IMG/VR virus record: IMGVR_UViG_3300022698_000267
Span: 186,001 to 250,000 of that record
Direction: 5' to 3' (one strand)
DNA: 64,000 nucleotides
Made by a program: the position numbers and the translations under genes. The notes under the pieces were generated by a model. That model had not been told where the DNA came from. It made no database searches and was given only the letters and a program-made list of their open reading frames with translations. Below, piece after piece: positions 5,855-31,207 of the stretch. Each line of letters opens with the position of its first letter. Position 1 is the first letter of the stretch.

Positions 5855-7551
5855 TTATGCCTGAAGATCTTTTAAAAGGTTTTGACCCTTCCAGTCCGGG
5901 ATTAGTTCCAGTTCTTAGAGCTGTTAGAGGTCCAAATGGTGTTTTTGTCAGAAAGTATCATGTAGATTTAGATAAAGTCAAGAAGATGATACAAGAGGCA
6001 GAGCTGAATGTAATTCCTTATTTGACTAGAATTCCAGGAAATAAATTCTTGAAGAGCTATTTGGAGACACAGAATATAAAAGAACTTCTTCAAAATCTAT
6101 TTGCTAAAAGTCCCAGAGGGATTTATGTTATCTACAACAGATATAGTAGAGCTGATCGTATAGAAACTTATCAACATACAAGACAAAGATTCTTTCAGAA
6201 TCTTTACGCTTATTACTTAACAAAAAGCAAGTTTGTAGAATTAACTTTAAAATCGTATATGCAGCCATCTTTAAAGTATATGCAGGATGTGCATGAAGAA
6301 TCAGTTTCTTCTAAATCTGAACGTATTAATGAGCAAGTTGTTTTTAGAAAAGCTACTCGTAAAAAAACTCAGAGGAATAGACCTTGGAAAATTTCTCAAA
6401 GTCCTCTATCTGGTGATTACTTAAAACCAAAATCGTTGTCAAATACTATAGCAAATTTAGAGCCTTCAGAAGATTTAGGTAAAGCAGTTACCTATAGACA
6501 AAAATCAGTCAGAAAAGAAGATCATCCTAAATTTGCCGGACAATTATCTAGACTACTAAACTATTTACATTTGAATTCTAAAAAAGCAATTCTTATGGTT
6601 TCTAAAACCCTTCTATTTGGAGGATTAGCAGATAAAGATTACTTGCTTAGTAATTTGACATTGCTTCCAAATATGTTGTATCCGACCAAATCTGATTACT
6701 GGTCAATGATAATTTCAAGAACAATCTTAAATACAGGAAGTTTGTTTCGGCAGTCCAGTTTGTGTGATACTGACAAAAGATTCTATCAGTACTTGTTATT
6801 ACAAAATATAGACGCAGATTCTTTTGATTCTGTGTGTGCTGTTATTCCACCACCATTTAAAATTCCAGATTCTTTAGATAGTAGTTGGGATAGCTATTCT
6901 GTTAATCAAAGAATGTACATCCTGGCTGCTAGAGCTGAATATGGAGAGTTTGAAAAGCAAGTTCTTCAAAATACGCAGGATTTAGATGAATTTATTCGTT
7001 ATCTTTCCGCTTTAGCTCCACTTCTAACTTCCAATGAGACTTTTGAAGTGATAGAATCTAGATATCCAGATATTTTGGATTTAGAAACTATTCTATACAA
7101 TATTAAATCTGTTCAAACCGGAGAAAAGGAACCAGATTTTTTGTACTTTTTAATTCAGTTATTTGGCTCCAAATTATTTAAACATCATTATCTTCCATAC
7201 GATAGAATTGGTGATACTAAACATGGACCATTTTCACCCTACTTGAGTTTGCAATTGAGGAATCAATTTATTTCAAGAGTCAAAAAAGAATTAATACAAT
7301 CTATTTCATCTTCTAATTCTAGTGGTTCAAATACAACGAATATTATTCTTCCAATCCCATCTATTAGACCATTAGATAGACAGTTATTTGTAAGGGCAGA
7401 GCCTTTAATGGCTGTTTTTCCAGAAGATTCTAATATTGAAGGCATTAAACTATCTATACCAACTGATAGAATCGTATATTCCTTCAAAGATTGTCTAATA
7501 GTTGGAGATCTTATTAAATCTATTCAGTCCAAATCATCTGAAGCATACTAA
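5851..7551 (+). CDS. Hypothetical protein (possible virion-internal protein)
   Basis: 566-aa ORF; N-terminal LVPVxxAV..GxF motif shared with the upstream gene. Confidence 0.75.
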   Translation: MIMPEDLLKGFDPSSPGLVPVLRAVRGPNGVFVRKYHVDLDKVKKMIQEAELNVIPYLTRIPGNKFLKSYLETQNIKELLQNLFAKSPRGIYVIYNRYSRADRIETYQHTRQRFFQNLYAYYLTKSKFVELTLKSYMQPSLKYMQDVHEESVSSKSERINEQVVFRKATRKKTQRNRPWKISQSPLSGDYLKPKSLSNTIANLEPSEDLGKAVTYRQKSVRKEDHPKFAGQLSRLLNYLHLNSKKAILMVSKTLLFGGLADKDYLLSNLTLLPNMLYPTKSDYWSMIISRTILNTGSLFRQSSLCDTDKRFYQYLLLQNIDADSFDSVCAVIPPPFKIPDSLDSSWDSYSVNQRMYILAARAEYGEFEKQVLQNTQDLDEFIRYLSALAPLLTSNETFEVIESRYPDILDLETILYNIKSVQTGEKEPDFLYFLIQLFGSKLFKHHYLPYDRIGDTKHGPFSPYLSLQLRNQFISRVKKELIQSISSSNSSGSNTTNIILPIPSIRPLDRQLFVRAEPLMAVFPEDSNIEGIKLSIPTDRIVYSFKDCLIVGDLIKSIQSKSSEAY

Positions 7552-7616
7552 ATTATAGATATTCATAATGAAAGATTCATACGATTTGGATAACTAGGAA
7601 AAGAGGTTACTGAAAC

Positions 7617-10921: not shown

Positions 10922-12534
10922 GTGATGCCATTAGCCGTTTTAGGAGAGGTAAGAAAGGTAATGTAGATACAGACTTATCTTCTGAAAAATTAATGTTATC
11001 TGCTGCAATACTCTCCACTAATTTTTGTAGAACTGTCTTTAGAAAGTATAAACCTGAATTTATACAAAATGAATTCATTAGAGATAGTATGAATTGGTGT
11101 ATGGACTATTTTCGTGAATTCGATAAAGCACCAAAATCCGATATTGAAAGAGTATTTGAGTATAAATCTTCTAAGTTAGATCCATCTAGTAAAGAACTTA
11201 TTGAATATCTTCTATTTTCCATATCACAGGATTCTAAGGGTTTAGTTGTAAGCGATCATAACTATGTTCTAAAAGAAACTTTAAAGTATTTCAGGAAAAG
11301 ACACTTAGATATAGCTTTGATGAAGTCTAGAGCTCTTTTAGATTCTGGAAATGTAGATAAGGCAGTAGAGTCTATTGCTGGTGAAAATTTTCAGGAAGAC
11401 CTAGCTTACGAAGGAAGATTAGAAGATATTTTTGACAGAGAAAGTATAGAATCTGCTTGGTCTAAGGTTGATACTGAGCACGTTTTTGCTTTTAGTGGAG
11501 GAGCAGCAACATTAAATAAACTAGTTGGTTACATTAAGAAGGGTTGGTTGATGGCTTTTTTAGCTCCTCCAAAGAGGGGTAAGACCAGTTGGTTATTAGA
11601 AACTGCCTGTCAAGCAATGTCTTATGGTGCAAAAGTCCTTTTTGTTAGTTTGGAAATGAATTCCAAAGCAATAAGACAGAGATTCTATTCCAGATTTTTG
11701 AATAAACCTTACGGTTCATTCCAAAGTGAAAGAAATTTTAAAACAGGTCCTGGAGGAGAACTGCTTTCTAGGATTCCATATATAGACTGTGAACACAATA
11801 AAAGTAATTCTTGTAAAAGAGAGGAAAGGACAAAATATAAGACAGAACATTACCCATCTGATGATGTGGAAGATACTGAAGCGCCTTGCTTTGGTTGCAT
11901 CTACAGTCCAGAGTCTGATTTTTCTTTTAGTGTTGAGTCCATATGGGTTGAAGTTAATTCAAATTCTTATGAAGCAGATCACAGAAGCTTGTTTGCTATA
12001 GGAAGGCATCTAAAAAGGTATCTTAGATTAGTCACTTATCCCAGTTTTCTTGGTGGGATTGATGATATACAACAGGATTTAGAGGTTGCAAAATCTCAAG
12101 GGTTTCGACCTGATGTGATTATAATAGATTATGCCGATATTCTAAAGCCACCAGGATTTGGAGGTGGTGATCCAAGACATAATCTGGATTTAATTTGGAA
12201 GACTCTAAAAGGTTTGGCGGAGGCAACTAATTCTGTAGTTATAACTGCTAGTCAGACTAATAGAAAGGCTGTAGAGGAGAGGAGAATAGGACAAAAGCAT
12301 GTTGCTGAAGATTTTAGAAAACTCGCACATGTTGATGTTTTTATGGCTATAAATCAAAACGATTTTGAAAAGGATATTGGAATAAAAAGAATTAATGTTA
12401 TAGCCCATAGGCATAAAGATTTTTCTGAGAATGTAGAGTTGAATTTAACTGAAGCTTTACATATGGGTCAGGTTTGTGTTAGTTCCATTATTCCACCCAG
12501 AAAGAAGAAAAAGGAGGAAGATGAAGATGAGTAA
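10918..12534 (+). CDS. dnaB: Replicative DnaB-like helicase with a Cys-rich insertion
   Basis: APPKRGKT Walker A, SLEM, IIIDYAD, ASQTNR. Confidence 0.9.
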   Translation: MSDAISRFRRGKKGNVDTDLSSEKLMLSAAILSTNFCRTVFRKYKPEFIQNEFIRDSMNWCMDYFREFDKAPKSDIERVFEYKSSKLDPSSKELIEYLLFSISQDSKGLVVSDHNYVLKETLKYFRKRHLDIALMKSRALLDSGNVDKAVESIAGENFQEDLAYEGRLEDIFDRESIESAWSKVDTEHVFAFSGGAATLNKLVGYIKKGWLMAFLAPPKRGKTSWLLETACQAMSYGAKVLFVSLEMNSKAIRQRFYSRFLNKPYGSFQSERNFKTGPGGELLSRIPYIDCEHNKSNSCKREERTKYKTEHYPSDDVEDTEAPCFGCIYSPESDFSFSVESIWVEVNSNSYEADHRSLFAIGRHLKRYLRLVTYPSFLGGIDDIQQDLEVAKSQGFRPDVIIIDYADILKPPGFGGGDPRHNLDLIWKTLKGLAEATNSVVITASQTNRKAVEERRIGQKHVAEDFRKLAHVDVFMAINQNDFEKDIGIKRINVIAHRHKDFSENVELNLTEALHMGQVCVSSIIPPRKKKKEEDEDE

Positions 12535-13486
12535 ATCCATATGTCCGATTTGCGAGGAGAGATTCAGTGATGTTCTGTCCCATATACTTTCAACAGATGA
12601 TCAAGCACATGCAGATATTATAGCTAGTGTGCATGAGGTCATAGATGCTTTGGTTAACACCAGAACATATGTTGGTGAAGTGGTAGAAATACTTAAGGCC
12701 AAAGATCCAAGATTTTGGTTTGTAACATATGGTTTTGTTGCAAATTATGTGAAGAAAAAGATTGGTTCAGACAGAGTTCATGGCTTTTTGGATAGTGCAA
12801 AAGAAAAACAACCAACTCCAGAATTTCTTGCAACGATGGAAGAAAGTGTAGAAGATTTGAAAGCTTTGTGGATACCTGGAAGTTATGCTAAAGTATTATC
12901 TCAGATTTTGTCAGCAACTAGTGCTAATCCCACTGCTTATCTTTCACATTTCCAAGATTTGAGTTTTTGTAGTATTTGTGGATCTAATAAAGATGTTAGA
13001 GCAACATTTGTCGATGAGGATAGCCAGAATATCCTAATTTCAAACATGGAACCTTTATGTTCCGATTGTAAATCATTAGAAATTTTAGAAGGCGTCCTTC
13101 CATTTGCTACAATAAGTAAAGATTTTTCTTTTGCTGGAGCTCATAAACTTCCAGACTATGATGGCGATTGTAACTTCTTGCATGGACATGAATGGAAATT
13201 TACGGTATCTGTTCGAAAAAGAATTAATCCTATCACCGGAATGATAATTGATTTCAAGAAATTAAAAGCAATTGTTAATGCGAATATTGTTGATCTTCTT
13301 GACCATTCTTATCTCAATGACTTTTTTCCAAATCCTACTGCTGAGAACATTGTGGTATGGATGTGGGAGAGGTTGATGTTTGATGGTTTACTTAAAGGGT
13401 TGGAATCTATTAGACTATGGGAAAGTCCAACTAGTTTTATAACACTTACTAAACAAGATATGTTATCAGTCTTTGGGAGGATGTAA
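12527..13486 (+). CDS. queD: 6-carboxytetrahydropterin synthase QueD fused to N-terminal Zn-finger/degenerate HNH domains; start moved to ATG 12527
   Basis: FAGAHKL, CNFLHGH, DHSYLN, PTAENI and WESPTS in the C-terminal ~130 aa; AGGAGG RBS. Confidence 0.9.
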   Translation: MSKSICPICEERFSDVLSHILSTDDQAHADIIASVHEVIDALVNTRTYVGEVVEILKAKDPRFWFVTYGFVANYVKKKIGSDRVHGFLDSAKEKQPTPEFLATMEESVEDLKALWIPGSYAKVLSQILSATSANPTAYLSHFQDLSFCSICGSNKDVRATFVDEDSQNILISNMEPLCSDCKSLEILEGVLPFATISKDFSFAGAHKLPDYDGDCNFLHGHEWKFTVSVRKRINPITGMIIDFKKLKAIVNANIVDLLDHSYLNDFFPNPTAENIVVWMWERLMFDGLLKGLESIRLWESPTSFITLTKQDMLSVFGRM

Positions 13487-14160
13487 TGTTTTCACTTTAT
13501 AGCATTTTTGATTCAATCGATGGAGAAGTAAATGCTTTTCATCAAGGAGTTCTTACCACTTTTATTAGATTTTCTCAGTGTAATTTATCATGTAAGTGGT
13601 GTGATACACAATATGCCGCAAAGAGATCAGATGGTATGGAAATTAGTTTGTCTAATCTTTTAGAGGATCTCTTTGCTTCCAGAGGGGAAAAATTAAAGAA
13701 AGTGACAATTACTGGTGGTGAGCCTTTACTACAAGAGGAGTTATCTACTCTATTGCAGGAATTAGTTGCTAGAGATATTAAAGTTTCAATAGAAACTAAT
13801 GGAACTTTAGAACCGATTCAACAATTCGTAGGTATTCCAGAAGTTTGTTGGGTCTATGATTTTAAGTTGAAGAATTCTGGGCAGCGTAATAGAATGAATT
13901 TAAATGCTTTTGGATTCCTTTCGAAAAATGATTTTGTAAAGTTTGTTGTTGGGAGTTCTGATGATGTTAAAGAAGCTATGGATGTAGGAAAGGTTCTAAG
14001 AGAAAATGGTTGTGAAGCAAAGTTTGCATTTTCTCCAGTACATGACGAATTTACTCCACAACAGCTTTTAAGGGAGATTGAAATTTATGGTACTGGAGAT
14101 GAAATTATAAACCTCCAATTACATAAGTACATTTGGGGAATAACGAAGGAAGAACACTAG
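13486..14160 (+). CDS. queE: 7-carboxy-7-deazaguanine synthase QueE (radical SAM)
   Basis: SIDGE, CNLSCKWCDT, TGGEP, ETNG, QLHKYIW. Confidence 0.93.
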   Translation: MFSLYSIFDSIDGEVNAFHQGVLTTFIRFSQCNLSCKWCDTQYAAKRSDGMEISLSNLLEDLFASRGEKLKKVTITGGEPLLQEELSTLLQELVARDIKVSIETNGTLEPIQQFVGIPEVCWVYDFKLKNSGQRNRMNLNAFGFLSKNDFVKFVVGSSDDVKEAMDVGKVLRENGCEAKFAFSPVHDEFTPQQLLREIEIYGTGDEIINLQLHKYIWGITKEEH

Positions 14161-14177
14161 AGGGGAGGAATTTAAAA

Positions 14178-14885
14178 ATGGTTAGAGCACTGATTCGAGA
14201 ATCTTATCAAGCTTTATTGGAAACAAAATTGGTTCCAGGTGTAGAATCGAAAGAATTTGATATGGAGAACGATGATTTACAGAAGCTATGTGACAGTTTT
14301 CTAGACTCTGTTGAATTGGTTCCTATTGAAAAGGAACAATTAATTCCACCAAAAGTTATTGATTTATACAATGACATTGTGGATGGAATAGTTGTGGTTA
14401 CTGAAACTTCTACGGCTGCTGAGCCATCAAAAGAGGAAGAGAAGAAGCCAGAGGTATCAGAGGAGGATGAAAAGTTGATCTCTTCTGCTCAAGAGAAAGT
14501 TGCTAAAGAACTTCTTGAAGATAAAGATGGATCAAAACCTGAACCAAAGAAGGCTGAATCAAAGAAGGCTGAATCAAAACCTGAACCAAAGAAGGCTGAA
14601 TCAAAACCTGAACCAAAGAAGGCTGAATCCGATTCTGACACTGGTATTAATATTTTTGGTAGAAGAAAGAATAGCAAGTACGGATTCATTGATGAAAAGC
14701 TTTTAGAAGGCATTACAATGGATAGTTTGGTTTCTATAGTTTCCGAGAAATTTGATATGGATCCAAAGAAAACGTTGGGAACTATAAAAGCTCATATTCG
14801 AAATGTCACAAATAAAAGAAACGAAGCCGATTGTTTGGAGGAAGAGGATGGAATTCTTCGTTTCGTCCAGAAGGAGGCTTCATAA
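14178..14885 (+). CDS. Acidic hypothetical protein with KPEPKKAES repeats; start moved to ATG 14178
   Basis: GGAGG RBS; low-complexity linker and helical C-terminus. Confidence 0.7.
   Translation: MVRALIRESYQALLETKLVPGVESKEFDMENDDLQKLCDSFLDSVELVPIEKEQLIPPKVIDLYNDIVDGIVVVTETSTAAEPSKEEEKKPEVSEEDEKLISSAQEKVAKELLEDKDGSKPEPKKAESKKAESKPEPKKAESKPEPKKAESDSDTGINIFGRRKNSKYGFIDEKLLEGITMDSLVSIVSEKFDMDPKKTLGTIKAHIRNVTNKRNEADCLEEEDGILRFVQKEAS
14532..14630 (+). repeat. Coding tandem repeat (27-bp unit tcaaaacctgaaccaaagaaggctgaa plus partial copies)
   Basis: Seen directly; encodes SKPEPKKAE repeats. Confidence 0.9.
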
Positions 14886-15688
14886 TGGATGAGTTGATGG
14901 ACGTACAAAAAACTAAACCTATTCATCAAATACCAATAGATTTTGTTGGGATTGGTGGATTCAAACTTCCAATTTGTGTTAGCACAAAGGCAGGACCATA
15001 TCAAAATACCATTGCAGATGTTACTGTGTATGGAAATCTTCCAGCAGACAAAAAAGGGATTGATATGAGTAGAATCCCAATAGCTATACAAAAGTTTTCT
15101 GGTCAAAGATTAGATGTCAGTGTAACGAATGAAGTGGCCGAACATATACGAAGAAAGTTGGAAGTAGATTTGTGTAAAGTGACTTACAAATTCCCTTATT
15201 TTCTACAAAAGATTGCACCTGTGAGTAGAGAGCCCGGAATAGTATCTTATGATGTAACATTTCATCTAATAAAGACAGAAGACTCTTCTGATTTTTATAT
15301 GTCTATAGTTGTCTTTGGCACTAGTTTGTGTCCATGTAGTAAAGAAATCAGTGAAAATTCGGCGCATAATCAAAGGGTTCGGGTTAAAGTAGGTTTAAAA
15401 CCATTTGCTGATCAATTCATATGGATAGAGGATATTATAACTCTTGTTGAGGCTTCATGCTCTGGACAAATGTACAGTGTTTTAAAAAGAGTGGATGAAA
15501 AGCATGTCACTGAAACAATGTACGATAATCCAAAATTTGTAGAAGATATTATACGGGAATGTGCTTTCCGACTATCTTTAGAAAAGTCAGTGGAAAAGTA
15601 CAATATTACTGTAAGTTCTCAAGAAAGTATTCATCAACATGATGCAATTGCTATTGTGTCTGGAAAGAATGGGGTCGATAATGACTGA
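14885..15688 (+). CDS. folE2: GTP cyclohydrolase I type FolE2; start moved to ATG 14885
   Basis: KGIDMSR, SLCPCSKEIS..SAHNQR, KRVDE, PKFVEDIIR, ESIHQHDA. Confidence 0.93.
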   Translation: MDELMDVQKTKPIHQIPIDFVGIGGFKLPICVSTKAGPYQNTIADVTVYGNLPADKKGIDMSRIPIAIQKFSGQRLDVSVTNEVAEHIRRKLEVDLCKVTYKFPYFLQKIAPVSREPGIVSYDVTFHLIKTEDSSDFYMSIVVFGTSLCPCSKEISENSAHNQRVRVKVGLKPFADQFIWIEDIITLVEASCSGQMYSVLKRVDEKHVTETMYDNPKFVEDIIRECAFRLSLEKSVEKYNITVSSQESIHQHDAIAIVSGKNGVDND

Positions 15689-16310
15689 ATGGAAAAGTGA
15701 GGTTCGAATTGAAAATTCACTTCCTGTACAAGGTTTGAAACTTCATGTTGGTTGTGGCAGAAGAATTCTGGAAGACTATATAAATATTGATATAACCAGA
15801 ACGCTTTTGAAAGACTTAGATCTTTTCCTTTCCGATTCTGAAGTCAATTACATAAATCAAAGTTTTATTGAATGCTCATCTGATGATATGCCTCTACCAG
15901 ACGAATGTGCTGCTGAGATTCTATGTGAACATACTCTAGAACATCAAACTCCAGAAGAGATATATGAAACTCTATGGGAGTTTGCCAGAGTATTAAAGCC
16001 TGATGGTATACTAACTGTTTCTGGTCCAAATTTCGCACACTTTGCTAAGACATTCGATAAGTACAAAAACAACTATCTGGATTCCATTGATGTTATGTAT
16101 GCAATTCTTTGTAATACCAGAAATGTTAAAAGAATGTCACCCCATAGAAGTTTATTGTGGGCAGAGTTTCTGGTTCCATTGGTTAGAAGGAGTGGTTTTA
16201 CTATCCTGGAGGTTATAGAAAATGATGAACTGAAAATTATAGCTTCTAGAGATAGTGATCGAGTTGTTAGGGTCCTTAATGTCCAAGGAGGTGAAAAAGA
16301 TGAAAGTTAG
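15681..16310 (+). CDS. Class I SAM-dependent methyltransferase (type 11-like); start moved to ATG 15681
   Basis: LHVGCG motif I, INIDI, EHTLEH, RVLKPDG. Confidence 0.85.
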   Translation: MTEWKSEVRIENSLPVQGLKLHVGCGRRILEDYINIDITRTLLKDLDLFLSDSEVNYINQSFIECSSDDMPLPDECAAEILCEHTLEHQTPEEIYETLWEFARVLKPDGILTVSGPNFAHFAKTFDKYKNNYLDSIDVMYAILCNTRNVKRMSPHRSLLWAEFLVPLVRRSGFTILEVIENDELKIIASRDSDRVVRVLNVQGGEKDES

Positions 16311-17288: not shown

Positions 17289-18419
17289 ATGAGTAAGAAA
17301 ATAAAAATTGCAATTATGGGCCTTGGAAACTGTTCGTGTTCTCTCATCCAAGGCATTCACTACTATTCGAAAGATGAACATATGCCAAAAAATCCAGAAG
17401 ATCCAAAAGATTTTGTACCTGGATTAATGCATTGGGATTTGGCTGGTTACAAACCAGGTGACATTGAAGTGGTTGCAGCATTTGATGTTGACAGACGAAA
17501 GGTTGGTCGTGACGTATCGGAAGCTATTTTTCAAAGACCTAATTGCACGAAGGTTTTTGAGCCAGATATTCCTGAGTATGGGGTTACAGTTCATATGGGT
17601 GTAATTTTGGATGGAGTTGCTCCACATATGGCAAATTATCCAGAAGATTGTGCATTTTCCACGGCTAATGAAATACAACCTTCTAAAGAGCAGATAGTTG
17701 AGATTCTAAAAAAATCTGAAGCTGATATTGTCGTAAATTACCTTCCAGTTGGTTCCCAAAAAGCTGTAGAATTCTATGCTGAATGTACATTAGAAGCTGG
17801 TTGTGGTTTTGTGAACTGCATACCAGTTTTTATTGCAAGTGATCCAGAATGGGAAGAAAAGTTTGCTAAAGCAAATTTGCCCATTGTTGGTGACGATATC
17901 AAGTCTCAGGTTGGAGCTACGATTGTACATAGAATTCTTACAGATCTTTTCAAGAAACGTGGTGTTCCTTTGGACACGACTTACCAGATAAATTTTGGTG
18001 GAAATACAGACTTCTTAAATATGTTGAATCGAGATAGACTGGTTAGCAAGAAAATCTCGAAGACAGAAGCTGTACAATGTCAAGCAAAACACAGATTGTC
18101 CGATAGAAATATTCATGTTGGACCAAGCGATTATATTCCATGGTTAGATGACAATAAGATCTGTAATATTAAGATGAATGGTCGTCTATTTGGGGATGTT
18201 CCAATGGATATCGAACTTCGGCTTTCAGTGGAAGATTCACCAAATTCTGCTGGTGTGGTAATCGATGCTGTTCGTTGCTGTAAATTGGCTCTGGACAGGG
18301 AAACAGGTGGATGTGTGTATCCAGCTAGTGCTTATTTCATGAAACATCCACCCAAACAATATCAGGACGATGTTGCTTACCGATTGGTAGAATCGTTCAT
18401 TATAGGAGGAACAGAGTGA
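17289..18419 (+). CDS. ino1: myo-inositol-1-phosphate synthase
   Basis: GLGNC, NYLPVGS, GDDIKSQVGATIVHR, GGNTDFLNM, SKKISKT, EDSPNSAG. Confidence 0.96.
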   Translation: MSKKIKIAIMGLGNCSCSLIQGIHYYSKDEHMPKNPEDPKDFVPGLMHWDLAGYKPGDIEVVAAFDVDRRKVGRDVSEAIFQRPNCTKVFEPDIPEYGVTVHMGVILDGVAPHMANYPEDCAFSTANEIQPSKEQIVEILKKSEADIVVNYLPVGSQKAVEFYAECTLEAGCGFVNCIPVFIASDPEWEEKFAKANLPIVGDDIKSQVGATIVHRILTDLFKKRGVPLDTTYQINFGGNTDFLNMLNRDRLVSKKISKTEAVQCQAKHRLSDRNIHVGPSDYIPWLDDNKICNIKMNGRLFGDVPMDIELRLSVEDSPNSAGVVIDAVRCCKLALDRETGGCVYPASAYFMKHPPKQYQDDVAYRLVESFIIGGTE

Positions 18420-19183
18420 ACTTTTTCTTAGATAGTGGTGCCTTTTCTGCTTTTACTCAAGGTTCAGCCATAGATCTAGATTCATACATCTCTTTTATCA
18501 AACAAAATGAAAAGGATGTGACAGTTTACGCAAATTTGGATGTTATTGGTGACGTCGAGGCCTCTTGGGAAAATCAACGATATATGGAAAGCAAAGGATT
18601 AACTCCATTGCCAGTTTTTCACGTTGAAGATCCAATAGAATATCTATACAAATGTATGGATTATGATTATTTCTGTCTTGGTGGTATGGCTTCTGCTACA
18701 ATGGACCTTCGAATTAACTTTTTAGATAAATGCTGGTATATTATCTGTGATACACCAGACAACATGCCAAAAAACAAAGTGCATGGTTTTGGTATGACCG
18801 CACATAAATTGATGTTTCGATATCCATGGTATTCTGTAGATAGTACTAGTTGGTCGCAGACTGCAGGATTTGGAAACATTTTTGTTCCAAGAAAAACGGT
18901 GAATGCTGAATTTGATTTCACAGAACCTCCTTTCAAAATATCTGTTTCAGATGAAAGTCCCAGTAAATCCGAATACGATATTCATATTGAAACTGCAACT
19001 GATGCTGCTAGAGAACACATCTTGAAATACTTTGATTTGATAGGTATAACTGAAATTGGTGTGAAAACCAGTCATTGGAATAGACGATATGTGAATGTCA
19101 CTTTCTTTACTGGTGTTGCTAAGGCACTAACTTGGCCAAGGCCATTCAAACCAAAGTTGATTAATAAAGGCTTTGGTCTCTAG
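18416..19183 (+). CDS. dpdA: TGT-fold transglycosylase, DpdA-like (deazaguanine insertion); lacks the usual N-terminus
   Basis: FLDSGAFS, NLDVIGD, PLPVFH, CLGG, HGFG and PWYSVDSTSW; located in the que cluster. Confidence 0.7.
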   Translation: MNFFLDSGAFSAFTQGSAIDLDSYISFIKQNEKDVTVYANLDVIGDVEASWENQRYMESKGLTPLPVFHVEDPIEYLYKCMDYDYFCLGGMASATMDLRINFLDKCWYIICDTPDNMPKNKVHGFGMTAHKLMFRYPWYSVDSTSWSQTAGFGNIFVPRKTVNAEFDFTEPPFKISVSDESPSKSEYDIHIETATDAAREHILKYFDLIGITEIGVKTSHWNRRYVNVTFFTGVAKALTWPRPFKPKLINKGFGL

Positions 19184-19435: not shown

Positions 19436-19595
19436 AGAAATTCGTAAAGAGATTCGTGAGCTTGAAGAATTAAGAGATTCTGGAAATCCTCCTTCTGATG
19501 AAATTTTTGAAAAATTGGATTCTTTATACAATCAAGAACTGAAACTGTTGGCTACACATATTGATAAGAAGGAGGATAGTTCTAATGAAAGTTAA
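19416..19595 (+). CDS. Small coiled-coil protein (59 aa; below the ORF-track cutoff)
   Basis: Hand-translated MKSKTIEEIRKEIRELEEL...SSNES*; fills the gap and overlaps both neighbours. Confidence 0.6.
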   Translation: MKSKTIEEIRKEIRELEELRDSGNPPSDEIFEKLDSLYNQELKLLATHIDKKEDSSNES

Positions 19596-20616
19596 GGACT
19601 TGAAAAGCATATGTCAGAAGTTACGTCCTGGTTTAGATAGACAGAAGTCTTTGATAGAGCATTTCAGACATATCTGTTTTACTGGAAAACGAATTATTAC
19701 ATTCAATGAAAGAATCTGTGTTGCATATCCATTTGAAACAAGTTTTTCATGTTCGGTTTCTGGACACGATTTTATTAATATGATTTCTAATCTTCCTCAG
19801 AATGAAGACATAGTTATTCGAATGGTCAAAGATATGCTGCGAATTCGTGGTGAAGGCACTAGTATTAAGATGTCTACTTACAATGACCAGAAACTTTCAG
19901 GTATATATGAAGATGCTTTCAATAAAGATTTTGAATGGCTGCCTCTTCCAGAAGATTTTATGGAAGCAATTAACCTATGTCATTTCACAGTTGCCAAAGA
20001 TTTAACCAGGCAATATCTTAACTACATCAAAATATCTGCTTCTGATGTAACAAGTTCTGATAATTTAAGAATTTCTAAATATAACTTAAAATCTGCAGTA
20101 GAAAAAGACTTTTTTATCCCAGGTAACGTTTGTAAACCTCTGCTACAGTACAAGGTTACTTCTTTTTGTATATCCGAGCCTTGGTTAGGATTTAAGACCG
20201 ACGATGATATTGAATTCTTTTGCAGAACTTCTGATATTGAATATCCAGATGTTTCTGCTCTATTTGAATTCGAAGGTGAAACTTTTAATCTGCCCACCGA
20301 ATTAAAAGCCATAGTTGAATCATTAACAGTTGTAACAGAGGAGGATTTTTTAACGGACAGACACATGACGGTGACTATAAAGGACAATATAGTATCCTGT
20401 TTTGTCGAGAAAGAGACTGTGTCGGCAAATAGGTGGGTTGAAACCGATATTAACAGGGAATTGTCATTTGTAATTAACCCAGTATTCTTCAATGAAATAT
20501 TGGAGAAAACCCGAACCATAAAGATTTCAGAAGGGAGAGCTCTCTTTATGGCGGGTAATTTCAATCATCTTCTAGCGCTTCCGGTTAAGAGTAAAGGAGA
20601 AAGTAATGATTCTTAG
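19585..20616 (+). CDS. DNA polymerase sliding clamp (beta-clamp-like); start moved to ATG 19585
   Basis: ~340 aa, alternating beta/alpha pattern, SSDNLRIS and EYPDVSALF segments typical of DnaN-like clamps; lies next to pol and clamp loader. Confidence 0.65.
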   Translation: MKVKDLKSICQKLRPGLDRQKSLIEHFRHICFTGKRIITFNERICVAYPFETSFSCSVSGHDFINMISNLPQNEDIVIRMVKDMLRIRGEGTSIKMSTYNDQKLSGIYEDAFNKDFEWLPLPEDFMEAINLCHFTVAKDLTRQYLNYIKISASDVTSSDNLRISKYNLKSAVEKDFFIPGNVCKPLLQYKVTSFCISEPWLGFKTDDDIEFFCRTSDIEYPDVSALFEFEGETFNLPTELKAIVESLTVVTEEDFLTDRHMTVTIKDNIVSCFVEKETVSANRWVETDINRELSFVINPVFFNEILEKTRTIKISEGRALFMAGNFNHLLALPVKSKGESNDS

Positions 20617-23347
20617 TACTGAAGGTTTCTTCTTTAAAGAACCAACCTTGGCGGAGAAAAAAGCGGCTAGGAAGAGGGATTACAGTAAAGGTAATTCATC
20701 CAAGCCAAAGAAAAAAAGAGCAGCTTCTGGAAGTACAAAAACTGTTGATCAAAAATTGAAAGATAATCCTTGTGAAGTTTGTGGTCTTTACAAGAAAGGA
20801 TGTGAATCTCCATTCATGCAGTATACAGGAGAAGGAAGAACAAAAGCCCTTATTATTGGGGAAGCTCCAGGTGCTGCAGAAGACGCAAAGTGGAAAAAAT
20901 TGGGATATGATGTTCCAACTCAGTTTATTGGTGATGCTGGACAACTTCTTAGAAAGGAACTTCGTCTTCTTGGGTATAATCTGGATAAAGATTTTTGGAA
21001 GGTAAATGCTTGTAATTGTAGACCTCCTGGGAATGCCACACCAACTACCAAACAATTGAAAGCCTGTTGGAATTTCATAGTAGAACCAACCATTAAAAAG
21101 TTGAAACCAAAGGTCATTTTTCTAATGGGAGGAGCAGCAGTTGCTCAATACTTTGCAAAAATCTCTGGAAGTAAGAATGTTCTTGGTATAAATAGATGGA
21201 GAAGGCTTTGTATTCCAGATTTGGATTACGATGTTTGGGTAGTTCCTCTATTTCATCCGTCTTTCATTTTAAGGAAAAGAAATGATGCAAATCTAAAATC
21301 GGTTTATCAAAGAGATTTAAAATTTGCAATTTCTGCCATTTCTAAACCAAAGATTGAAAGAATTGATTATGAATCTAAAGTAGAAATTGTAAAAGATTTT
21401 GATAGAGTCTGTGAGGTTTTAATAGAAGCTAGAAAACAGAAGTTTATAGTTTTCGATTTTGAAACCTCTGGAAAGAAACCTTATGATTCTAAACATAGAA
21501 TATGGTCTATGTCTTTAGCTTGGAACAGAGAAAAGGCCTATTCTTTTGCTTATCAATATCCTGGATGTTGGACAGATGAGCAATTAAAAACAATTCAGAT
21601 ATTAGTTGCTGAATTATTAAATGATGAAAATGTTTTAAAAGGTGCACACAACCTGAAGTTCGAGCATCTTTGGTCTTGTAAATTCTTTACGGAACCGAAG
21701 AATTGGATTTGGTGTACTATGTTAACTGCTCATATTTTAGATAATAGGGGTGGTATTAGTGGATTAAAATTTCAGGTTTTCTATAGATATGGAATTCCAG
21801 ATTATGGAGCTAGTCTACATCAACTTATGATAAAGAAGGATCAGAATGGATTAAATCTATTGTATAAAGCTGATCTGGATGAATTGCTATTATATGGTGG
21901 ATTAGACAGTTTGTTCACTTTCATGCTGTTTGAGGATCAAAAATTAGAGCTCAGACGTTATAAGAATACGTTAAATATGGCTCATCCATTTTTTCATAAA
22001 GGCATTCTGGCTTTAGCAAGGGCTGAAATGAATGGATTTAATGTATCCATGGATTTTTATGAAGAAAAAGATGGAGAGCTTGCTGACCAGATTGCAGAAA
22101 TAGAGCATCGATTAGTTAATGGAGATTATGGTTCCAAATTTAGAGAGATAGAAGGAAAGGATATAAATCCCAGATCTACTTCCGATATTAAAAAGTTATT
22201 CTTTGATATTCTAAATATGAAACCTTTGAGAATGACTGACAAAGGGAATCCTGCTTTAGATAAATCTTGTATGGAAGAATGGAATCTACCATTTACCAAT
22301 GACATTCTACAGTTGAGGATGTTGGAGAAGATAAAAGGGACATATCTGGCTCAGTTTAAAAGAGAGGTTAATGAAGATGGAAGAATACACCCAAACTTTA
22401 ATCTTCACATTCCAAGGACTTATAGATCTAGCTCCAATGAACCAAATTTTCAGAACATTCCGGTTCGCAGCAAATTAGCAAAGGAAGTTACTAGAGGAGG
22501 AATAATTCCAAGTCCTGGTAACAGACTAATGGAAGGTGACTTTGGTAGCCTTGAAGTTAGAATTTCTGCTTGTTATCATAAAGATCCCAATATGTTAACG
22601 TACATCAATGATCCCACTACTGATATGCATAGGGATAGTGCAGCTGATATTTGGCTGCTAGAAACAGATGAAGTTTCAAAAGATATTCGATTTTATGCTA
22701 AAAATGGTTGGGTTTTCCCACAGTTCTATGGTGATTGGTATGATTCTTGTGCAAGGGGATTATGGGGTAATTGCTTAGAATTACAAACGGAAAGAAATAT
22801 AAGTTTATATGATCATATTAGGTCTAAAGGAATTAAAAATCTGGAAGATTTTATTGCTCATTGTAAAGATGTGGAAGACAAATTTTGGAACGTTCGTTTT
22901 AAAGTCTATAAAAAATGGAAGGATAAGATTAATAAGCAGTATAGAGATCAGGGTTACATAGAAACATACTTTGGTTTTCGTCTCGGTGGATACATGGGGA
23001 AGAAGGATGTTACTAATTATCCTATACAAAGCAGTGCTTTCCATTGTCTTCTATGGTCATTCATTAGGGCAGATGAAATAGCTCGTAAAGAAAGATGGAA
23101 GAGTAAGTTGATTGGTCAAATTCATGATAGTATTATAGCCGATTTGCATCCTGATGAAACGTATCATGTCATTGACACTTTGAATAATATTATGAATGTT
23201 CAAATGCGAGAAGAGCTTCCCTGGATTATTGTTCCTTTGGAAGTGGACTTTGAACTAACTGGAATAGATCAACCATGGTCAACGAAGGACGATTTTGATC
23301 TATCGCAATTATCAATTAAAAAAGAGGAAGAGGAGATGATGCTATGA
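20606..23347 (+). CDS. polA: Family A DNA polymerase with N-terminal family-4 uracil-DNA glycosylase domain and 3'-5' exonuclease
   Basis: UDG: CEVC, GEAPG, CRPPGN, HPS; exo: DFETSG, HNLKFE; pol: DFGSLEVR, KNG..FPQFYG, QIHDS. Confidence 0.95.
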   Translation: MILSTEGFFFKEPTLAEKKAARKRDYSKGNSSKPKKKRAASGSTKTVDQKLKDNPCEVCGLYKKGCESPFMQYTGEGRTKALIIGEAPGAAEDAKWKKLGYDVPTQFIGDAGQLLRKELRLLGYNLDKDFWKVNACNCRPPGNATPTTKQLKACWNFIVEPTIKKLKPKVIFLMGGAAVAQYFAKISGSKNVLGINRWRRLCIPDLDYDVWVVPLFHPSFILRKRNDANLKSVYQRDLKFAISAISKPKIERIDYESKVEIVKDFDRVCEVLIEARKQKFIVFDFETSGKKPYDSKHRIWSMSLAWNREKAYSFAYQYPGCWTDEQLKTIQILVAELLNDENVLKGAHNLKFEHLWSCKFFTEPKNWIWCTMLTAHILDNRGGISGLKFQVFYRYGIPDYGASLHQLMIKKDQNGLNLLYKADLDELLLYGGLDSLFTFMLFEDQKLELRRYKNTLNMAHPFFHKGILALARAEMNGFNVSMDFYEEKDGELADQIAEIEHRLVNGDYGSKFREIEGKDINPRSTSDIKKLFFDILNMKPLRMTDKGNPALDKSCMEEWNLPFTNDILQLRMLEKIKGTYLAQFKREVNEDGRIHPNFNLHIPRTYRSSSNEPNFQNIPVRSKLAKEVTRGGIIPSPGNRLMEGDFGSLEVRISACYHKDPNMLTYINDPTTDMHRDSAADIWLLETDEVSKDIRFYAKNGWVFPQFYGDWYDSCARGLWGNCLELQTERNISLYDHIRSKGIKNLEDFIAHCKDVEDKFWNVRFKVYKKWKDKINKQYRDQGYIETYFGFRLGGYMGKKDVTNYPIQSSAFHCLLWSFIRADEIARKERWKSKLIGQIHDSIIADLHPDETYHVIDTLNNIMNVQMREELPWIIVPLEVDFELTGIDQPWSTKDDFDLSQLSIKKEEEEMML

Positions 23348-29303: not shown

Positions 29304-29335
29304 TTAAGTTATAAATATAAATGGAGGTTTTATTG

Positions 29336-31207
29336 ATGGGTATACATGAGAGTGTGTTACAAAATATGAGTGTAGAGCAACTAAGGGAAGAAATTAAAAA
29401 ACACGACAATCTTTATTGGAAAGAACAGAATCCCATTATTTCTGATCCAGATTATGACAGATTAGTCCGAAGACTACAAGAATTAGAACCGGATGACTCT
29501 TTGGTTAGTGAGTTTAAAGAAGAGGAAGTAACTTCTTCTGGAAAAATTGAACATGAAAATCCGATGTTAAGTTTGGATAAAGTCTACACTTCGGAAGAAG
29601 TTTTGAAATGGTGTAGAAAAGTAGCCAGAACAGTTAATGAGTGTTTTCTGCTACAAATTAAGTACGATGGTTGTTCTGCAGAACTTGATAATGACATTCT
29701 TTCCACTAGAGGTGATGGTCATATTGGAGAAGATATTTCAGATAAAATTCCACACATTCGAATTTTGACAGGACCAGATTTTATTCCAGCTATTGGATTT
29801 GAAGGCAAAATTAGGGGAGAATTGGTTTTACAAAAATCTGTTTTCTTACAATACAAAGATATTCTAAAGAGAAAAAGTGGAGAGCCTTATAAAAATTCCA
29901 GAAATGCTTGTGCAGGAATTTTAAATACCGATGATTTTGTCAGTCCTGTGAAAGAACCATTTTTAACCTTTGTTCCATTCGATAATTACACAATGTATAA
30001 GACTCTAAAGCAAATGGAGGATTTTATACTTAGTGGAGAATGGGATAAATTCGTTAAAGATTCTGAAAATCTAGATTATCCAGCAGATGGATTGGTTATA
30101 AAACTGGAAGATCAGTCTTATTGTAAAGAATTGGGAATGACCAAACATCATAGAAAATCAGAACTTGCTTTCAAATTTGCAAATCCGTCAGCTAAAACTG
30201 TTCTTAAAGGTGTGACTCTTAGTTGTGGTAAAGGTTGTGTTACACCAATTGGCAATGTTGAACCTGTTGAACTTGGTGGAGTTACAGTTAGCAATGTAAA
30301 TCTTCACAATTGGAAAAATATCTTGGATATGGGAATCTTCATTGGTGACACTTTGATAGTGGAAAGGGCGGGAGATGTAATCCCTTACGTTGTTGGAGTT
30401 ATTCCAGCTCAACATAGAGTTGCAATAGAAATGGATTACTGTCCAGTTTGTCATGGACCATTGACATATGAAGAACCTGTAAAAGTTTGTAAAAATCCTG
30501 AATGTGGTGGATCTAATCTTAGAAAATTGTCTGATTCCGTTGTACGAATCGGGATTGAAAGATTAGGTCGACCCACCCTTAAAGATATGATGAAAATTAT
30601 AGGTGTTGTAAATTTGATCGATATCTTCCATCTTACAGAAGACGATTTATTAAGACTTCCTAGATTTGGAAAAAGGAAGGCACAGAATCTACTTGAAGAA
30701 ATAGACAAAGTTAAAAAGAATGGAGTGTACGAATGGCAGATTCTTTCAGCCATGAATATTCCTGGAATTGGCAGTACACTAAGTGAAAAAATACTGGAAG
30801 TTTATAATCTCAGAGATCTTATCTTTTTGTGTAGAACAGAACCTGCAATTTCCGAATTAACTTCTTTAGATGGAATAGAGGTTGAAAGAGCCAGTATTTT
30901 AGTAGATGGTGTTTTGGATAATAAAGGATACCTTTTGAAATTGCTTTCTATTCTTCCTATTAAAGAACCGAAGAAGAAAGATTCGAAAGTTGTAAAGATT
31001 TGTTTCAGTGGTAAATTTCCTGATAAAAAGAAAGTATACTACCAGATGTTGGAAGGTAAAAATTTCGAGATTATGGAAAAAGTTGATAAAACCTTGGATA
31101 TTCTAGTTGTAGCAGATTCAACAAAAAATAGTGGTAAGCAGCAAAAAGCTGAAAAATTAGGAATTAAGGTCTTAGAACTAGACTCCCTACTAACTTCAAT
31201 TAAGTAG
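29336..31207 (+). CDS. ligA: NAD-dependent DNA ligase; start moved to ATG 29336
   Basis: PMLSL, KYDG, TRGDG, RGE, DGLVIK, AFKF, Zn finger, HhH and BRCT. Confidence 0.96.
   Translation: MGIHESVLQNMSVEQLREEIKKHDNLYWKEQNPIISDPDYDRLVRRLQELEPDDSLVSEFKEEEVTSSGKIEHENPMLSLDKVYTSEEVLKWCRKVARTVNECFLLQIKYDGCSAELDNDILSTRGDGHIGEDISDKIPHIRILTGPDFIPAIGFEGKIRGELVLQKSVFLQYKDILKRKSGEPYKNSRNACAGILNTDDFVSPVKEPFLTFVPFDNYTMYKTLKQMEDFILSGEWDKFVKDSENLDYPADGLVIKLEDQSYCKELGMTKHHRKSELAFKFANPSAKTVLKGVTLSCGKGCVTPIGNVEPVELGGVTVSNVNLHNWKNILDMGIFIGDTLIVERAGDVIPYVVGVIPAQHRVAIEMDYCPVCHGPLTYEEPVKVCKNPECGGSNLRKLSDSVVRIGIERLGRPTLKDMMKIIGVVNLIDIFHLTEDDLLRLPRFGKRKAQNLLEEIDKVKKNGVYEWQILSAMNIPGIGSTLSEKILEVYNLRDLIFLCRTEPAISELTSLDGIEVERASILVDGVLDNKGYLLKLLSILPIKEPKKKDSKVVKICFSGKFPDKKKVYYQMLEGKNFEIMEKVDKTLDILVVADSTKNSGKQQKAEKLGIKVLELDSLLTSIK

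Follow-up and report, generated by a model that had tools for sequence, protein, structure and literature searches.

Why would a large phage carry a gene for myo-inositol-1-phosphate synthase (INO1) inside an operon for 7-deazaguanine DNA modification, and could inositol end up on its DNA? We addressed this question in a stretch of 64,000 nucleotides (the window; positions 186,001 to 250,000 of the 273-kb IMG/VR record IMGVR_UViG_3300022698_000267). A first-pass annotation had reported an intact INO1 gene between queC and a gene for a DpdA-like transglycosylase, within an otherwise continuous folE2/queD/queE/queC run, and had inferred that inositol may be attached to the deazaguanine 7-substituent, or to another base, as a bulky shield against restriction. 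The gene and its position were confirmed by our analysis. The proposed role is supported in part: the linkage to DNA-modification genes recurs widely, but nothing in our data tests the chemistry or a function as a restriction shield.

The INO1 open reading frame encodes a full-length protein of 376 aa. It matches Pfam PF01658 (E 9.7e-34; 116.2 bits against a gathering score of 27) and aligns end to end with M. tuberculosis Ino1 (PDB 1GR0, E 1.3e-117, query 2-373 against chain 13-367). The NCBIfam model TIGR03450 (mycothiol-type INO1 equivalog) is matched over positions 1-355 of 355 but below its cut-off (444.9 bits against 638); this model is tuned to actinobacterial INO1, and named non-actinobacterial INO1 are 65-69% identical to the query. 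All 109 columns that are invariant in 14 cellular INO1 from two deep clades are kept, and the enzyme is intact and canonical in sequence, although conversion of glucose-6-phosphate to inositol-3-phosphate was not assayed. It is possible, though unlikely, that the gene product acts in DNA modification other than as donor of the appended group, either by working on another sugar phosphate, as the MIPS-like Ari2 makes a five-membered cyclitol, or because inositol phosphate is a cofactor or regulator of the modifying enzymes. In line with this, the second-best solved structure is the five-membered-cyclitol-phosphate synthase 6K96 (E 5e-54), and divergent phage members such as those of Cr30 and RP13 have lost 20-30 of the 109 invariant positions. 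However, the window enzyme has lost none of them, resembles ordinary cellular INO1, and matches Ino1 far better than Ari2 (396 against 187 bits).

Reading of the junctions showed that the upstream QueC-like gene stops at TAA 17260-17262 and is followed by a spacer of 26 nt (not 27, as first annotated) that carries a GGAGG, after which the INO1 ATG lies at 17289. The INO1 stop TGA (18417-18419) overlaps the GTG start at 18416 of the DpdA-like gene (GTGA), such that INO1 is translationally coupled to it. The gene order differs from that first described, as the run includes an unknown low-complexity ORF and a class I methyltransferase (Table), and the gene annotated as queC encodes a strongly divergent QueC-like protein, not a canonical QueC. 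GTP cyclohydrolase, QueD, QueE and a DpdA-type transglycosylase are thus present together, as in phage Dpd-type systems; the nucleosides of the virion DNA were not analyzed for this metagenomic contig. A megablast search of the 8-kb cluster against 50,697 phage records found nothing.

Table. Genes in and around the INO1 locus (positions in the window). L084 is a relative of this phage at about 70% identity; L107 is an equally related locus.
Position	Strand	Feature	Observations
12476..13486	+	QueD (6-carboxytetrahydropterin synthase) with a Cys-rich N-terminal extension of about 210 aa	PF01242 at 1.5e-29 on residues 212-325; TIGR03367 above its cut-off; CxxxHGH signature present, so QueD and not DpdL
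13486..14160	+	QueE (radical SAM 7-carboxy-7-deazaguanine synthase)	phrog_2076 at 1.8e-38; TIGR03963 at 1e-46, below its cut-off
14133..14885	+	Unknown 250-aa protein, low complexity with KPEPKKAES repeats, conserved in relatives	No family hit; 46% identical homologues at the same place in L084 and L107
14831..15688	+	FolE2 (GTP cyclohydrolase IB)	PF02649 at 1.9e-75; NF010200 at 231.8 bits, above its cut-off of 215
15639..16310	+	Class I SAM methyltransferase; first gene of the three-gene accessory block	PF08241 at 1.3e-08; 55% identical in L084, absent from L107
16255..17262	+	Divergent QueC-like PP-loop ATPase (DK-type) with an N-terminal extension of about 80 aa; candidate ligase	PF06508 matches only residues 149-267, at 7.7e-12; finds only 19 of 50,697 phage records, of which 16 are INO1-bearing Menderaviruses
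17289..18419	+	INO1, myo-inositol-1-phosphate (inositol-3-phosphate) synthase	65-69% identical to cellular INO1; 72% identical to the L084 orthologue
18416..19183	+	DpdA-like DNA guanine transglycosylase (DpdA1-like)	No Pfam hit; phrog_887 (queuine tRNA-ribosyltransferase) at 1.3e-50; 37-39% identical to DpdA of Seuratvirus-type phages; tblastn 37-39% identity to annotated DpdA in 252 phage records; 76% identical in L084 and L107
19196..19435	+	Conserved 79-aa ORF of unknown function between DpdA and the sliding clamp	62-73% identical ORF at the same place in L084 and L107; no family hit
19561..23347	+	Sliding clamp (19561-20616) and family A DNA polymerase fused to an N-terminal UDG domain (20606-23347)	phrog_947; PF00476, PF03167 and PF01612
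59679..60521		Divergent thymidylate-synthase-like gene	

Whether INO1 is syntenic with que and dpdA genes in other phages had been put forward in advance as the test of the proposed role, and this synteny was found, more broadly than anticipated. INO1 lies inside que clusters in Menderavirus phages, in about 13 distinct metagenomic phage loci and in L084. A scan of IMG/VR found 437 viral contigs with INO1, of which only the best 80 loci were classified. Of the 79 loci other than the window, 73 have DNA base-modification genes within 6 kb: 12 are of the 7-deazaguanine (que) type, 61 are of the pyrimidine-hypermodification type and none has both, whereas the 6 exceptions are contigs of 4-10 kb. 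These counts carry no correction for phylogeny. The neighboring families of the pyrimidine type are PF18724 amino-acid:DNA transferase (19 of 24 members, best E 1.3e-52), PF18723 5-hmdU DNA kinase, P-loop kinase 3, Tet/JBP, thymidylate-synthase-like and C5 methylase. This recurrence in pyrimidine clusters fits the earlier suggestion that another base might be the target.

The INO1 of the window was captured independently. It is about 45% identical to the Menderavirus type, and in the tree the window and L084 INO1 are sister to those of Desulfobacterales, Marinimicrobia and Asgard (support 100/99), whereas the Menderavirus-type INO1 lies in the other deep clade, within which the que label needs at least 8 changes. 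It is also possible that INO1 is an auxiliary metabolic gene unrelated to DNA, which hitch-hikes in the operon and boosts the inositol pool of the host for lipids, osmolytes such as di-myo-inositol phosphate, or surface glycans during infection. The first-pass annotation had offered a similar alternative, a virion or host glycan or lipid, and this is weakened by our data. The closest cellular homologs are paired with IPCT/DIPPS-like genes, so the likely host phyla use inositol; no transferase is identified in the phage, and the authors of the Ps15 description treated INO1 as a stray bacterial gene. However, the neighbors of cellular INO1, examined as controls, are NTP_transferase plus CDP-OH_P_transf genes, or unrelated genes, and never DNA-modification genes, and the phage did not take the IPCT/DIPPS-type genes. 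Moreover, a metabolic role does not explain why 73 of 79 phage INO1 genes lie within 6 kb of DNA base-modifying enzymes of three different chemistries, often overlapping them, why two independent captures landed in que clusters, or the HAD-QueC-like fusion described below. Stenotrophomonas, Caulobacter and Ralstonia are not known inositol-lipid producers, although this was not tested here. We therefore consider a role unrelated to DNA unlikely.

In every que-linked locus INO1, together with its HAD gene where present, lies within about 0.8 kb of the QueC-like gene, while FolE, QueD, QueE and TGT change places. L084 keeps the block of methyltransferase, QueC-like gene and INO1 (the QueC-like protein at 67% identity), whereas L107, equally related by its DpdA and by its PolA (73%), goes straight from FolE2 to DpdA and lacks exactly these three genes. 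Loss of three adjacent genes could, however, be a single deletion that says nothing about shared function. We also hypothesized that the DK-type QueC-like subfamily occurs only with INO1, but this was rejected, as Bacteroides-phage and other que loci (L085, L086, L102-105 and L108 in our collection) have DK-type genes without INO1. The alignment of 12 QueC-like sequences was too divergent for the collection scan, and one of 4 sequences was used instead. INO1 is thus an add-on to QueC-like/DpdA clusters, not an obligatory part. The methyltransferase of the block is not DpdM, which is a DUF3109 protein with a CxxxCxxCC motif; it is only marginally similar (E 0.002) to the methyltransferase that fills the INO1 slot in L102-104, and has no tblastn match in the phage collection.

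The QueC-like protein was compared with the signature of canonical QueC, the preQ0 synthase (PMC13329287). It keeps the SGGxDS phosphate-binding loop (TGGLDS in the window, SGGLDS in other members), the VPxRN motif (IPARN, with R and N invariant) and the C(x)8CxxCxxC zinc motif (a Cys, 8 residues, then CGKCRAC). In contrast, the YPDC substrate motif, of which the Tyr is essential, aligns to GGDK; all 13 phage QueC-like proteins have x-D-K-(S/N/D) here, while the two canonical phage QueC in the same alignment have YPDC. The YxQxHxxE motif, also with an essential Tyr, is altered as well, with Y-V-D-F-G-H-P-Y where canonical sequences have Y-G/A-Q-R-H, such that the Q and H positions are not kept. 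Both motifs are required for preQ0 synthesis.

In 46 phage loci INO1 is accompanied by a small capless HAD gene of about 125 aa directly downstream. Sequence searches of this family against PDB and Pfam were uninformative, but the HAD fold is supported by a predicted model (pLDDT 92.5) with Foldseek hits to T4 Pnkp phosphatase, VSP and lipin/Nir2. A profile of 37 HAD sequences finds nothing in the 64-kb window, and neither the 250-aa ORF nor the QueD N-terminal extension is a phosphatase, one being of low complexity and the other Cys-rich, both without HAD motifs. In one que-linked locus (L038) an LNS2/HAD-like domain is fused to the QueC-like protein. This domain has a sub-threshold LNS2 hit in Pfam (1.7e-5) and is not significantly matched by the profile of the small HAD, so the fusion is probable but not proven to involve the same family.

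Taken together, our preferred reading, which we hold to be about as likely as not, is that the methyltransferase, QueC-like gene and INO1 form a three-gene accessory block plugged into a phage 7-deazaguanine DNA-modification operon. In this view FolE2, QueD and QueE make 7-carboxy-7-deazaguanine (CDG), and INO1 converts glucose-6-phosphate to inositol-3-phosphate, from which a host phosphatase may remove the phosphate, as the small HAD phosphatase that accompanies INO1 in most other phages is missing here. Inositol or inositol phosphate, possibly O-methylated, would be joined covalently to the deazaguanine, and DpdA would place that base in the phage DNA. The most likely joining enzyme is the divergent QueC-like protein, which would adenylate the CDG carboxylate and accept an inositol hydroxyl in place of ammonia. 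The gene identities, the operon junctions, the presence or absence of the block and the recurrent linkage of INO1 to DNA-modification genes come directly from our analysis, whereas it is by inference that inositol is placed on DNA, on a given base, through a given bond and by a given enzyme. There is no chemical evidence of any kind, no dedicated inositol transferase or activating enzyme is recognizable in the window, and raw nanopore or SMRT signal at G was not examined. The QueC-like protein may simply be the QueC of this lineage, or an ADG synthase, and an ester to inositol would be an unusual, fairly labile DNA adduct. Literature searches for inositol linked to phage DNA modification returned nothing relevant, and phage DLP6 is not among the INO1 hits.

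Alternatively, inositol could be attached to a pyrimidine and not to the deazaguanine, with INO1 in the que operon only because both are early DNA-metabolism genes. Sixty-one of the 73 linked loci are of the pyrimidine type, the nearest phage INO1 relatives in clade I all sit next to an amino-acid:DNA transferase, and the window has a divergent thymidylate-synthase-like gene. However, we searched the window for the partners that INO1 has elsewhere (small HAD, amino-acid:DNA transferase (ADDT), P-loop kinase 3, 5-hmdU kinase, TET/JBP, FkbM methyltransferase and the SGNH-like protein) and found none. As the analysis covered only 64 kb of the 273-kb genome, pyrimidine-modification genes that use inositol, including the kinase and transferase, could lie elsewhere; the whole contig was not annotated for kinase, transferase, phosphatase and IMPase genes. 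Nevertheless, que-type and pyrimidine-type markers never co-occur near INO1 in the 79 loci, and INO1 is coupled to DpdA and co-varies with the QueC-like gene, and we regard this alternative as unlikely.

More broadly, our data do not exclude that phages possess a widespread, undescribed class of DNA hypermodification in which a cyclitol (myo-inositol, its phosphate or a methyl ether) is covalently attached to nucleobases. A mobile INO1 donor cassette, with or without the HAD phosphatase, would then plug into at least three platforms: 7-deazaguanine clusters through a repurposed QueC-family ligase (this window, Menderavirus), 5-hydroxymethylpyrimidine clusters through a kinase plus amino-acid:DNA transferase (Cr30, RP13 and many metagenomic phages), and an SGNH-like plus kinase-like module. 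This remains tentative, and we consider it slightly less likely than not. Known phage DNA decorations are sugars, amino acids, polyamines and small deazaguanine substituents, so a cyclitol would be a new chemical class, and given the number of viral contigs with INO1 it may be common. It would extend the reactions of QueC-family enzymes and amino-acid:DNA transferases to polyol nucleophiles, give restriction-resistant DNA chemistry of use to enzymology and sequencing, and explain a gene that phage annotators have so far treated as a stray bacterial acquisition. Cultured phages with each module type exist, namely the Stenotrophomonas Menderaviruses, Caulobacter Cr30 on strain CB15 and Ralstonia RP13.

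Compared with described phage 7-deazaguanine clusters (FolE/QueD/QueE/QueC plus DpdA; dPreQ0, dADG, dG+, dPreQ1, mdPreQ1, fdPreQ1, dDG, dCDG; PMC6884629, PMC10516641), the window shares FolE2, QueD, QueE, a QueC-family gene and a DpdA1-like transglycosylase, and its DpdA-clamp-polymerase order occurs in dPreQ0 phages and matches that of Seuratvirus and Edwardsiella phage ZHS. It differs in carrying INO1 and a class I methyltransferase, neither of which is in any described pathway (the word inositol does not occur in the 2023 survey), in its remodeled DK-type QueC, and in having no QueF, Gat-QueC, ArcS, DpdL, DpdM or DpdN. In the que cluster of the Menderaviruses (Stenotrophomonas phages Moby, IME-SM1, Ps15, YB07 and others) the order is FolE-INO1-small HAD-QueC-like-TGT-QueE, with a QueC-like protein of the same DK type and an INO1 that is annotated in GenBank. 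This INO1, however, belongs to the other deep clade (44% identity) and has a HAD partner, the TGT is of a different 403-aa type, and the phage has a T4-like backbone; published descriptions call INO1 a horizontally acquired bacterial gene and do not connect it to the que genes.

The QueC-family ligases Cap9 and QatC of type IV CBASS and QatABCD (deazaguanylation) use a PP-loop ATPase scaffold with a zinc motif, activate CDG and join it to a nucleophile other than ammonia, and thus provide a precedent for the proposed ligase. Cap9 is among the few solved structures hit by the window protein (9nto, E 0.004), but the similarity is remote and no activity is shown; those enzymes modify a protein N-terminus in bacterial defense systems, whereas here the proposed nucleophile is a cyclitol hydroxyl and the target phage DNA. 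The thymidine hypermodification pathway (5-hmdU DNA kinase plus aGPT-Pplase/amino-acid:DNA transferase; PMC5889632, PMC8989533) supplies the enzyme set that flanks INO1 in the 61 pyrimidine-type loci, including Cr30 and RP13, and appends a nucleophile to an activated hydroxymethyl group. In phage ViI this is an O-nucleophile (serine). None of these enzymes is in the window, and the known appended groups are amino acids and polyamines, not cyclitols. Finally, in the cellular INO1-IPCT/DIPPS cassette (inositol phospholipid or di-myo-inositol phosphate synthesis), which shares with the window an INO1 of 65-69% identity, the next gene is an NTP_transferase plus CDP-alcohol phosphatidyltransferase fusion, whereas the phage took INO1 alone and put it between the QueC-like gene and DpdA.

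The 64-kb window is part of a 273.5-kb IMG/VR viral contig, IMGVR_UViG_3300022698_000267, has a G+C content of about 35%, and carries genes almost entirely on the + strand in this stretch. The gene of interest encodes a 376-aa protein that contains the Pfam INO1 domain (E 9.7e-34) and aligns end to end with M. tuberculosis Ino1 (PDB 1GR0, E 1.3e-117). It is 65-69% identical to INO1 of Desulfobacterales, Marinimicrobia, Caldatribacteriota and Asgard archaea, and it keeps all 109 alignment columns that are invariant across 14 cellular INO1 from two deep clades. The protein falls below the cut-off of the mycothiol-type NCBIfam model (445 against 638 bits), which we interpret as a sign of non-actinobacterial origin and not of lost function. 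A role other than that of donor, or an altered substrate, is considered the least likely of the alternatives to the reading developed below. The first-pass annotation had placed an intact INO1 between queC and a DpdA-like transglycosylase, and this observation is confirmed. The junctions are as it described apart from one base: the spacer after the upstream stop is 26 nt, not 27 nt, and contains a GGAGG, and the INO1 stop overlaps the GTG start of the next gene as GTGA.

The surrounding operon runs in the order QueD, QueE, a 250-aa ORF, FolE2, a class I SAM methyltransferase, a QueC-like protein, INO1, a DpdA-like transglycosylase, a 79-aa ORF, the sliding clamp, and a family A DNA polymerase with an N-terminal UDG domain. 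QueD has an intact CxxxHGH motif and an N-terminal Cys-rich extension of about 210 aa with paired-Cys motifs, whereas the 250-aa ORF is acidic/basic low complexity with KPEPKKAES repeats. Both are conserved in a close relative (L107; L-numbers denote individual loci), and the 250-aa ORF also in a second one (L084), but their function is unknown. The DpdA-like protein has no Pfam hit, though it matches phrog_887 at 1.3e-50 and is 37-39% identical to DpdA of many phages. Coordinates of the features discussed here are listed in the table.

Coordinates of features in the window and in other loci (L-numbers)
Location	Coordinates	Strand	Feature
Window	12476-13105		N-terminal part of the QueD ORF
Window	14133-14885		250-aa ORF between QueE and FolE2
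Window	17289-18419		INO1
Window	20606-23347	+	Family A DNA polymerase with N-terminal UDG domain
Window	29321-31207		NAD-dependent DNA ligase
Window	31603-32556, 34391-35575, 39514-40689		PRPP synthetase, RtcB RNA ligase and nicotinate phosphoribosyltransferase
Window	37089-38240	+	Adenylosuccinate-synthetase-like protein
Window	57381-59666	-	RNR
Window	59679-60521	-	Divergent thymidylate-synthase-like protein
L009	11062-11793		FkbM-family methyltransferase
L031	2991-3716		FkbM-family methyltransferase
L038	11688-12893		QueC-like protein with N-terminal HAD/LNS2-like domain
L074	8911-9987		358-aa protein with GDSH motif
L087 (MT836176.1)	6310-7605		Long-form INO1
L102	6840-8005		Class I methyltransferase and unknown 175-aa ORF in the INO1-HAD slot (same in L103, L104)
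L105	7090-7584		dCMP/cytidine deaminase

Whether ino1 is syntenic with que/dpdA genes in other phages had been put forward in advance as the test of the proposed link, and the linkage was indeed found. Among 50,697 phage genomes, INO1 occurs in 16 Stenotrophomonas Menderavirus records, in Caulobacter phage Cr30 and in Ralstonia phage RP13. In the Menderavirus Moby the order is FolE, INO1, a 123-aa protein, QueC-like, TGT, QueE. The paper describing phage Ps15 lists the que genes and, separately, calls INO1 a bacterial acquisition, without drawing a connection between them. A scan of IMG/VR found 437 viral contigs encoding INO1 relatives, of which the best 80 were examined, and profile searches show INO1 inside que clusters in about 13 distinct loci. 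INO1, with its small downstream partner where present, always lies within about 0.8 kb of the QueC-like gene, while FolE, QueD, QueE and TGT change places around them. A more distant sequence was found in a human faecal 'bacteriophage' contig (L087), a 431-aa long-form INO1 (PF07994 at 6.5e-103 plus PF01658) that is only 26% identical to that of the window; neither the viral nature of this contig nor the genes flanking INO1 were examined.

To look at INO1 neighbors without prior assumptions, we clustered all ORFs within 6 kb of INO1 and annotated the largest clusters. The commonest neighbors are hallmark DNA-hypermodification enzymes: an amino-acid:DNA transferase, PF18724 (49 loci; 19 of 24 sampled members match, best E 1.3e-52), P-loop nucleotide kinase 3 (43 loci), a thymidylate-synthase-like protein (27 loci), a Tet/JBP dioxygenase (18 loci), 5-hmdU DNA kinase-like proteins, a C5 DNA methylase and an FkbM-type methyltransferase. 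Cr30 and RP13 belong to this group. In all, 73 of the 79 IMG/VR loci other than the window have at least one DNA-modification marker within 6 kb, 61 being pyrimidine-type, 12 que-type and none both, and the six exceptions are contigs of 4-10 kb. A metabolic role unrelated to DNA is regarded as unlikely, though somewhat less so than the other alternatives. The FkbM-family methyltransferase lies directly next to INO1 in 13 transferase-type loci (L009, L031 and 11 others); as this family is known for O-methylating a cyclohexane-ring hydroxyl, this hints at a methylated inositol and parallels the methyltransferase in the block of the window.

A protein of about 125 aa follows INO1 in 46 loci, usually overlapping it by 1-11 nt. 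It has invariant DxDG, S/T, K and DD positions, and its model is confident (pLDDT 92.5), with HAD phosphatases without a cap domain as best structural matches (T4 Pnkp 3'-phosphatase, plant VSP and lipin/Nir2 LNS2). INO1 plus this enzyme would give free inositol. Alternatively, as capless HADs often act on large substrates, it could remove the phosphate after transfer to DNA. No such gene was found in the window. A third type of INO1 module, in L074 and 11 homologs, pairs INO1-HAD with a 358-aa protein that has an invariant GDSH motif and whose model (pLDDT 87) matches SGNH/GDSL esterases such as sialate O-acetylesterase; this module also has a protein with a 5-hmdU-kinase helical domain.

The INO1 tree has two deep clades with 100/100 support. 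In clade I the window and L084 are sister to cellular INO1 (100/99), and this clade also holds 23 phage INO1 that sit next to the DNA transferase and have no HAD. Clade II is Saccharibacteria-like and contains the HAD-associated phage INO1, with the que-type, transferase-type and third module type intermixed; the que label needs at least 8 changes on the tree. Saccharibacteria INO1 sequences (L088, L091) nest inside the phage clade II with 100/100 support, suggesting gene transfer between these bacteria and phages, in an undetermined direction. Thus, an INO1 gene has become attached to que clusters at least twice from different sources, and the cassette has also moved repeatedly between modification platforms.

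Within the lineage of this phage, L084, a Logan contig with proteins 55-76% identical to those of the window, keeps FolE2, methyltransferase, QueC-like, INO1, DpdA, clamp and polymerase. Its INO1 is 72% identical, as well conserved as DpdA and the polymerase. L107 is an equally close relative (DpdA 76%, polymerase 73%, FolE2 73%) that has DnaB, QueD, QueE, the 250-aa ORF and FolE2, followed by DpdA 30 nt later; the methyltransferase, QueC-like gene and INO1 are absent together, and no close INO1 or QueC-like gene from that 55-kb contig appeared in the two collection scans. The distant relative L108 has a QueC-like gene alone in the same slot. INO1 is therefore an accessory that travels with the QueC-like gene and the methyltransferase.

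The QueC-like protein is far from canonical QueC: BLASTP against QueC of phage SeppeHuegi gives E 3e-4 over 124 residues, and PDB QueC 2PG3 scores E 0.046. A tblastn search of all phage genomes returned only the 16 Menderavirus records and three Bacteroides or faecal phages. When compared with the experimentally defined QueC signature, it keeps the phosphate loop, the RN loop and the zinc motif, but YPDC is replaced by x-D-K-(S/N/D) in all 13 phage QueC-likes and the YxQxH motif is changed. QueC-family enzymes with altered pockets, Cap9 and QatC, are known to ligate CDG to a protein amine instead of ammonia. In L038 the QueC-like protein carries an N-terminal HAD/LNS2-like domain (FDFDGT..., Pfam LNS2 at 1.7e-5, below threshold) and the locus has no separate small HAD, so this is a probable fusion of the INO1 partner with the QueC-like protein. 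These points make the QueC-like protein the best candidate for joining CDG to inositol, though the case is weakened because the same subfamily occurs in que clusters that lack INO1. In L102-104 the gene order matches that of the INO1-bearing loci L060 and L066 (QueE-QueD-FolE-TGT-x-QueC-like), but a class I methyltransferase and an unknown 175-aa ORF occupy the slot of INO1-HAD; this slot may take interchangeable tailoring genes. In L105, also a que cluster without INO1, a dCMP/cytidine deaminase gene sits between the QueC-like gene and QueD.

Other genes of the window bear on the possibility that a pyrimidine is modified. UDG-fused family A polymerases, co-occurring with a ligase, were reported in a 2026 paper for phages with hypermodified thymidine such as SP-15 and YerA41, and an NAD-dependent DNA ligase lies near the polymerase of the window; this phage may therefore also modify T. 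Next to RNR is a divergent thymidylate-synthase-like protein, matched by Pfam only in its C-terminal part (E 2e-5) but by a profile of the TS-like proteins found near INO1 in other phages at 1.4e-13, which could be a pyrimidine hydroxymethylase rather than ThyA. The UDG-polymerase fusion and the TS-like gene favor attachment of inositol to a pyrimidine by genes outside the window, an alternative that nevertheless seems unlikely. The window also encodes a 383-aa adenylosuccinate-synthetase-like protein (PF00709, 1.5e-39), with bacterial PurA as best solved relatives (about E 1e-20); phage PurA homologs include PurZ of 2-aminoadenine genomes, and the protein was not assigned to either. PRPP synthetase, RtcB RNA ligase and nicotinate phosphoribosyltransferase lie together downstream of the replication module and form a nucleotide/NAD salvage set typical of large phages.

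The best-supported explanation, which we hold to be about as likely as not, is that INO1 provides inositol or inositol phosphate that is covalently attached to the 7-deazaguanine base of the phage. In this view the methyltransferase, QueC-like and INO1 block would act as a tailoring module downstream of CDG, and DpdA would install the base. The earlier proposal of an inositol-decorated base is partly supported: the gene arrangement and its recurrence beside DNA-modification genes are established by the analysis, whereas the attachment is inferred, as the chemistry was not tested here. Our literature searches on inositol and phage DNA modification found no report of inositol on DNA. 7-Deazaguanine clusters in phages are already described.

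Among known systems, the dPreQ0 phage SeppeHuegi and Edwardsiella phage ZHS show the same layout of QueC, FolE, DpdA, clamp and polymerase, but without INO1. In contrast to the phage genes, the closest cellular INO1 genes are followed by an NTP-transferase plus CDP-alcohol phosphatidyltransferase fusion, and Saccharibacteria INO1 stands among unrelated genes.
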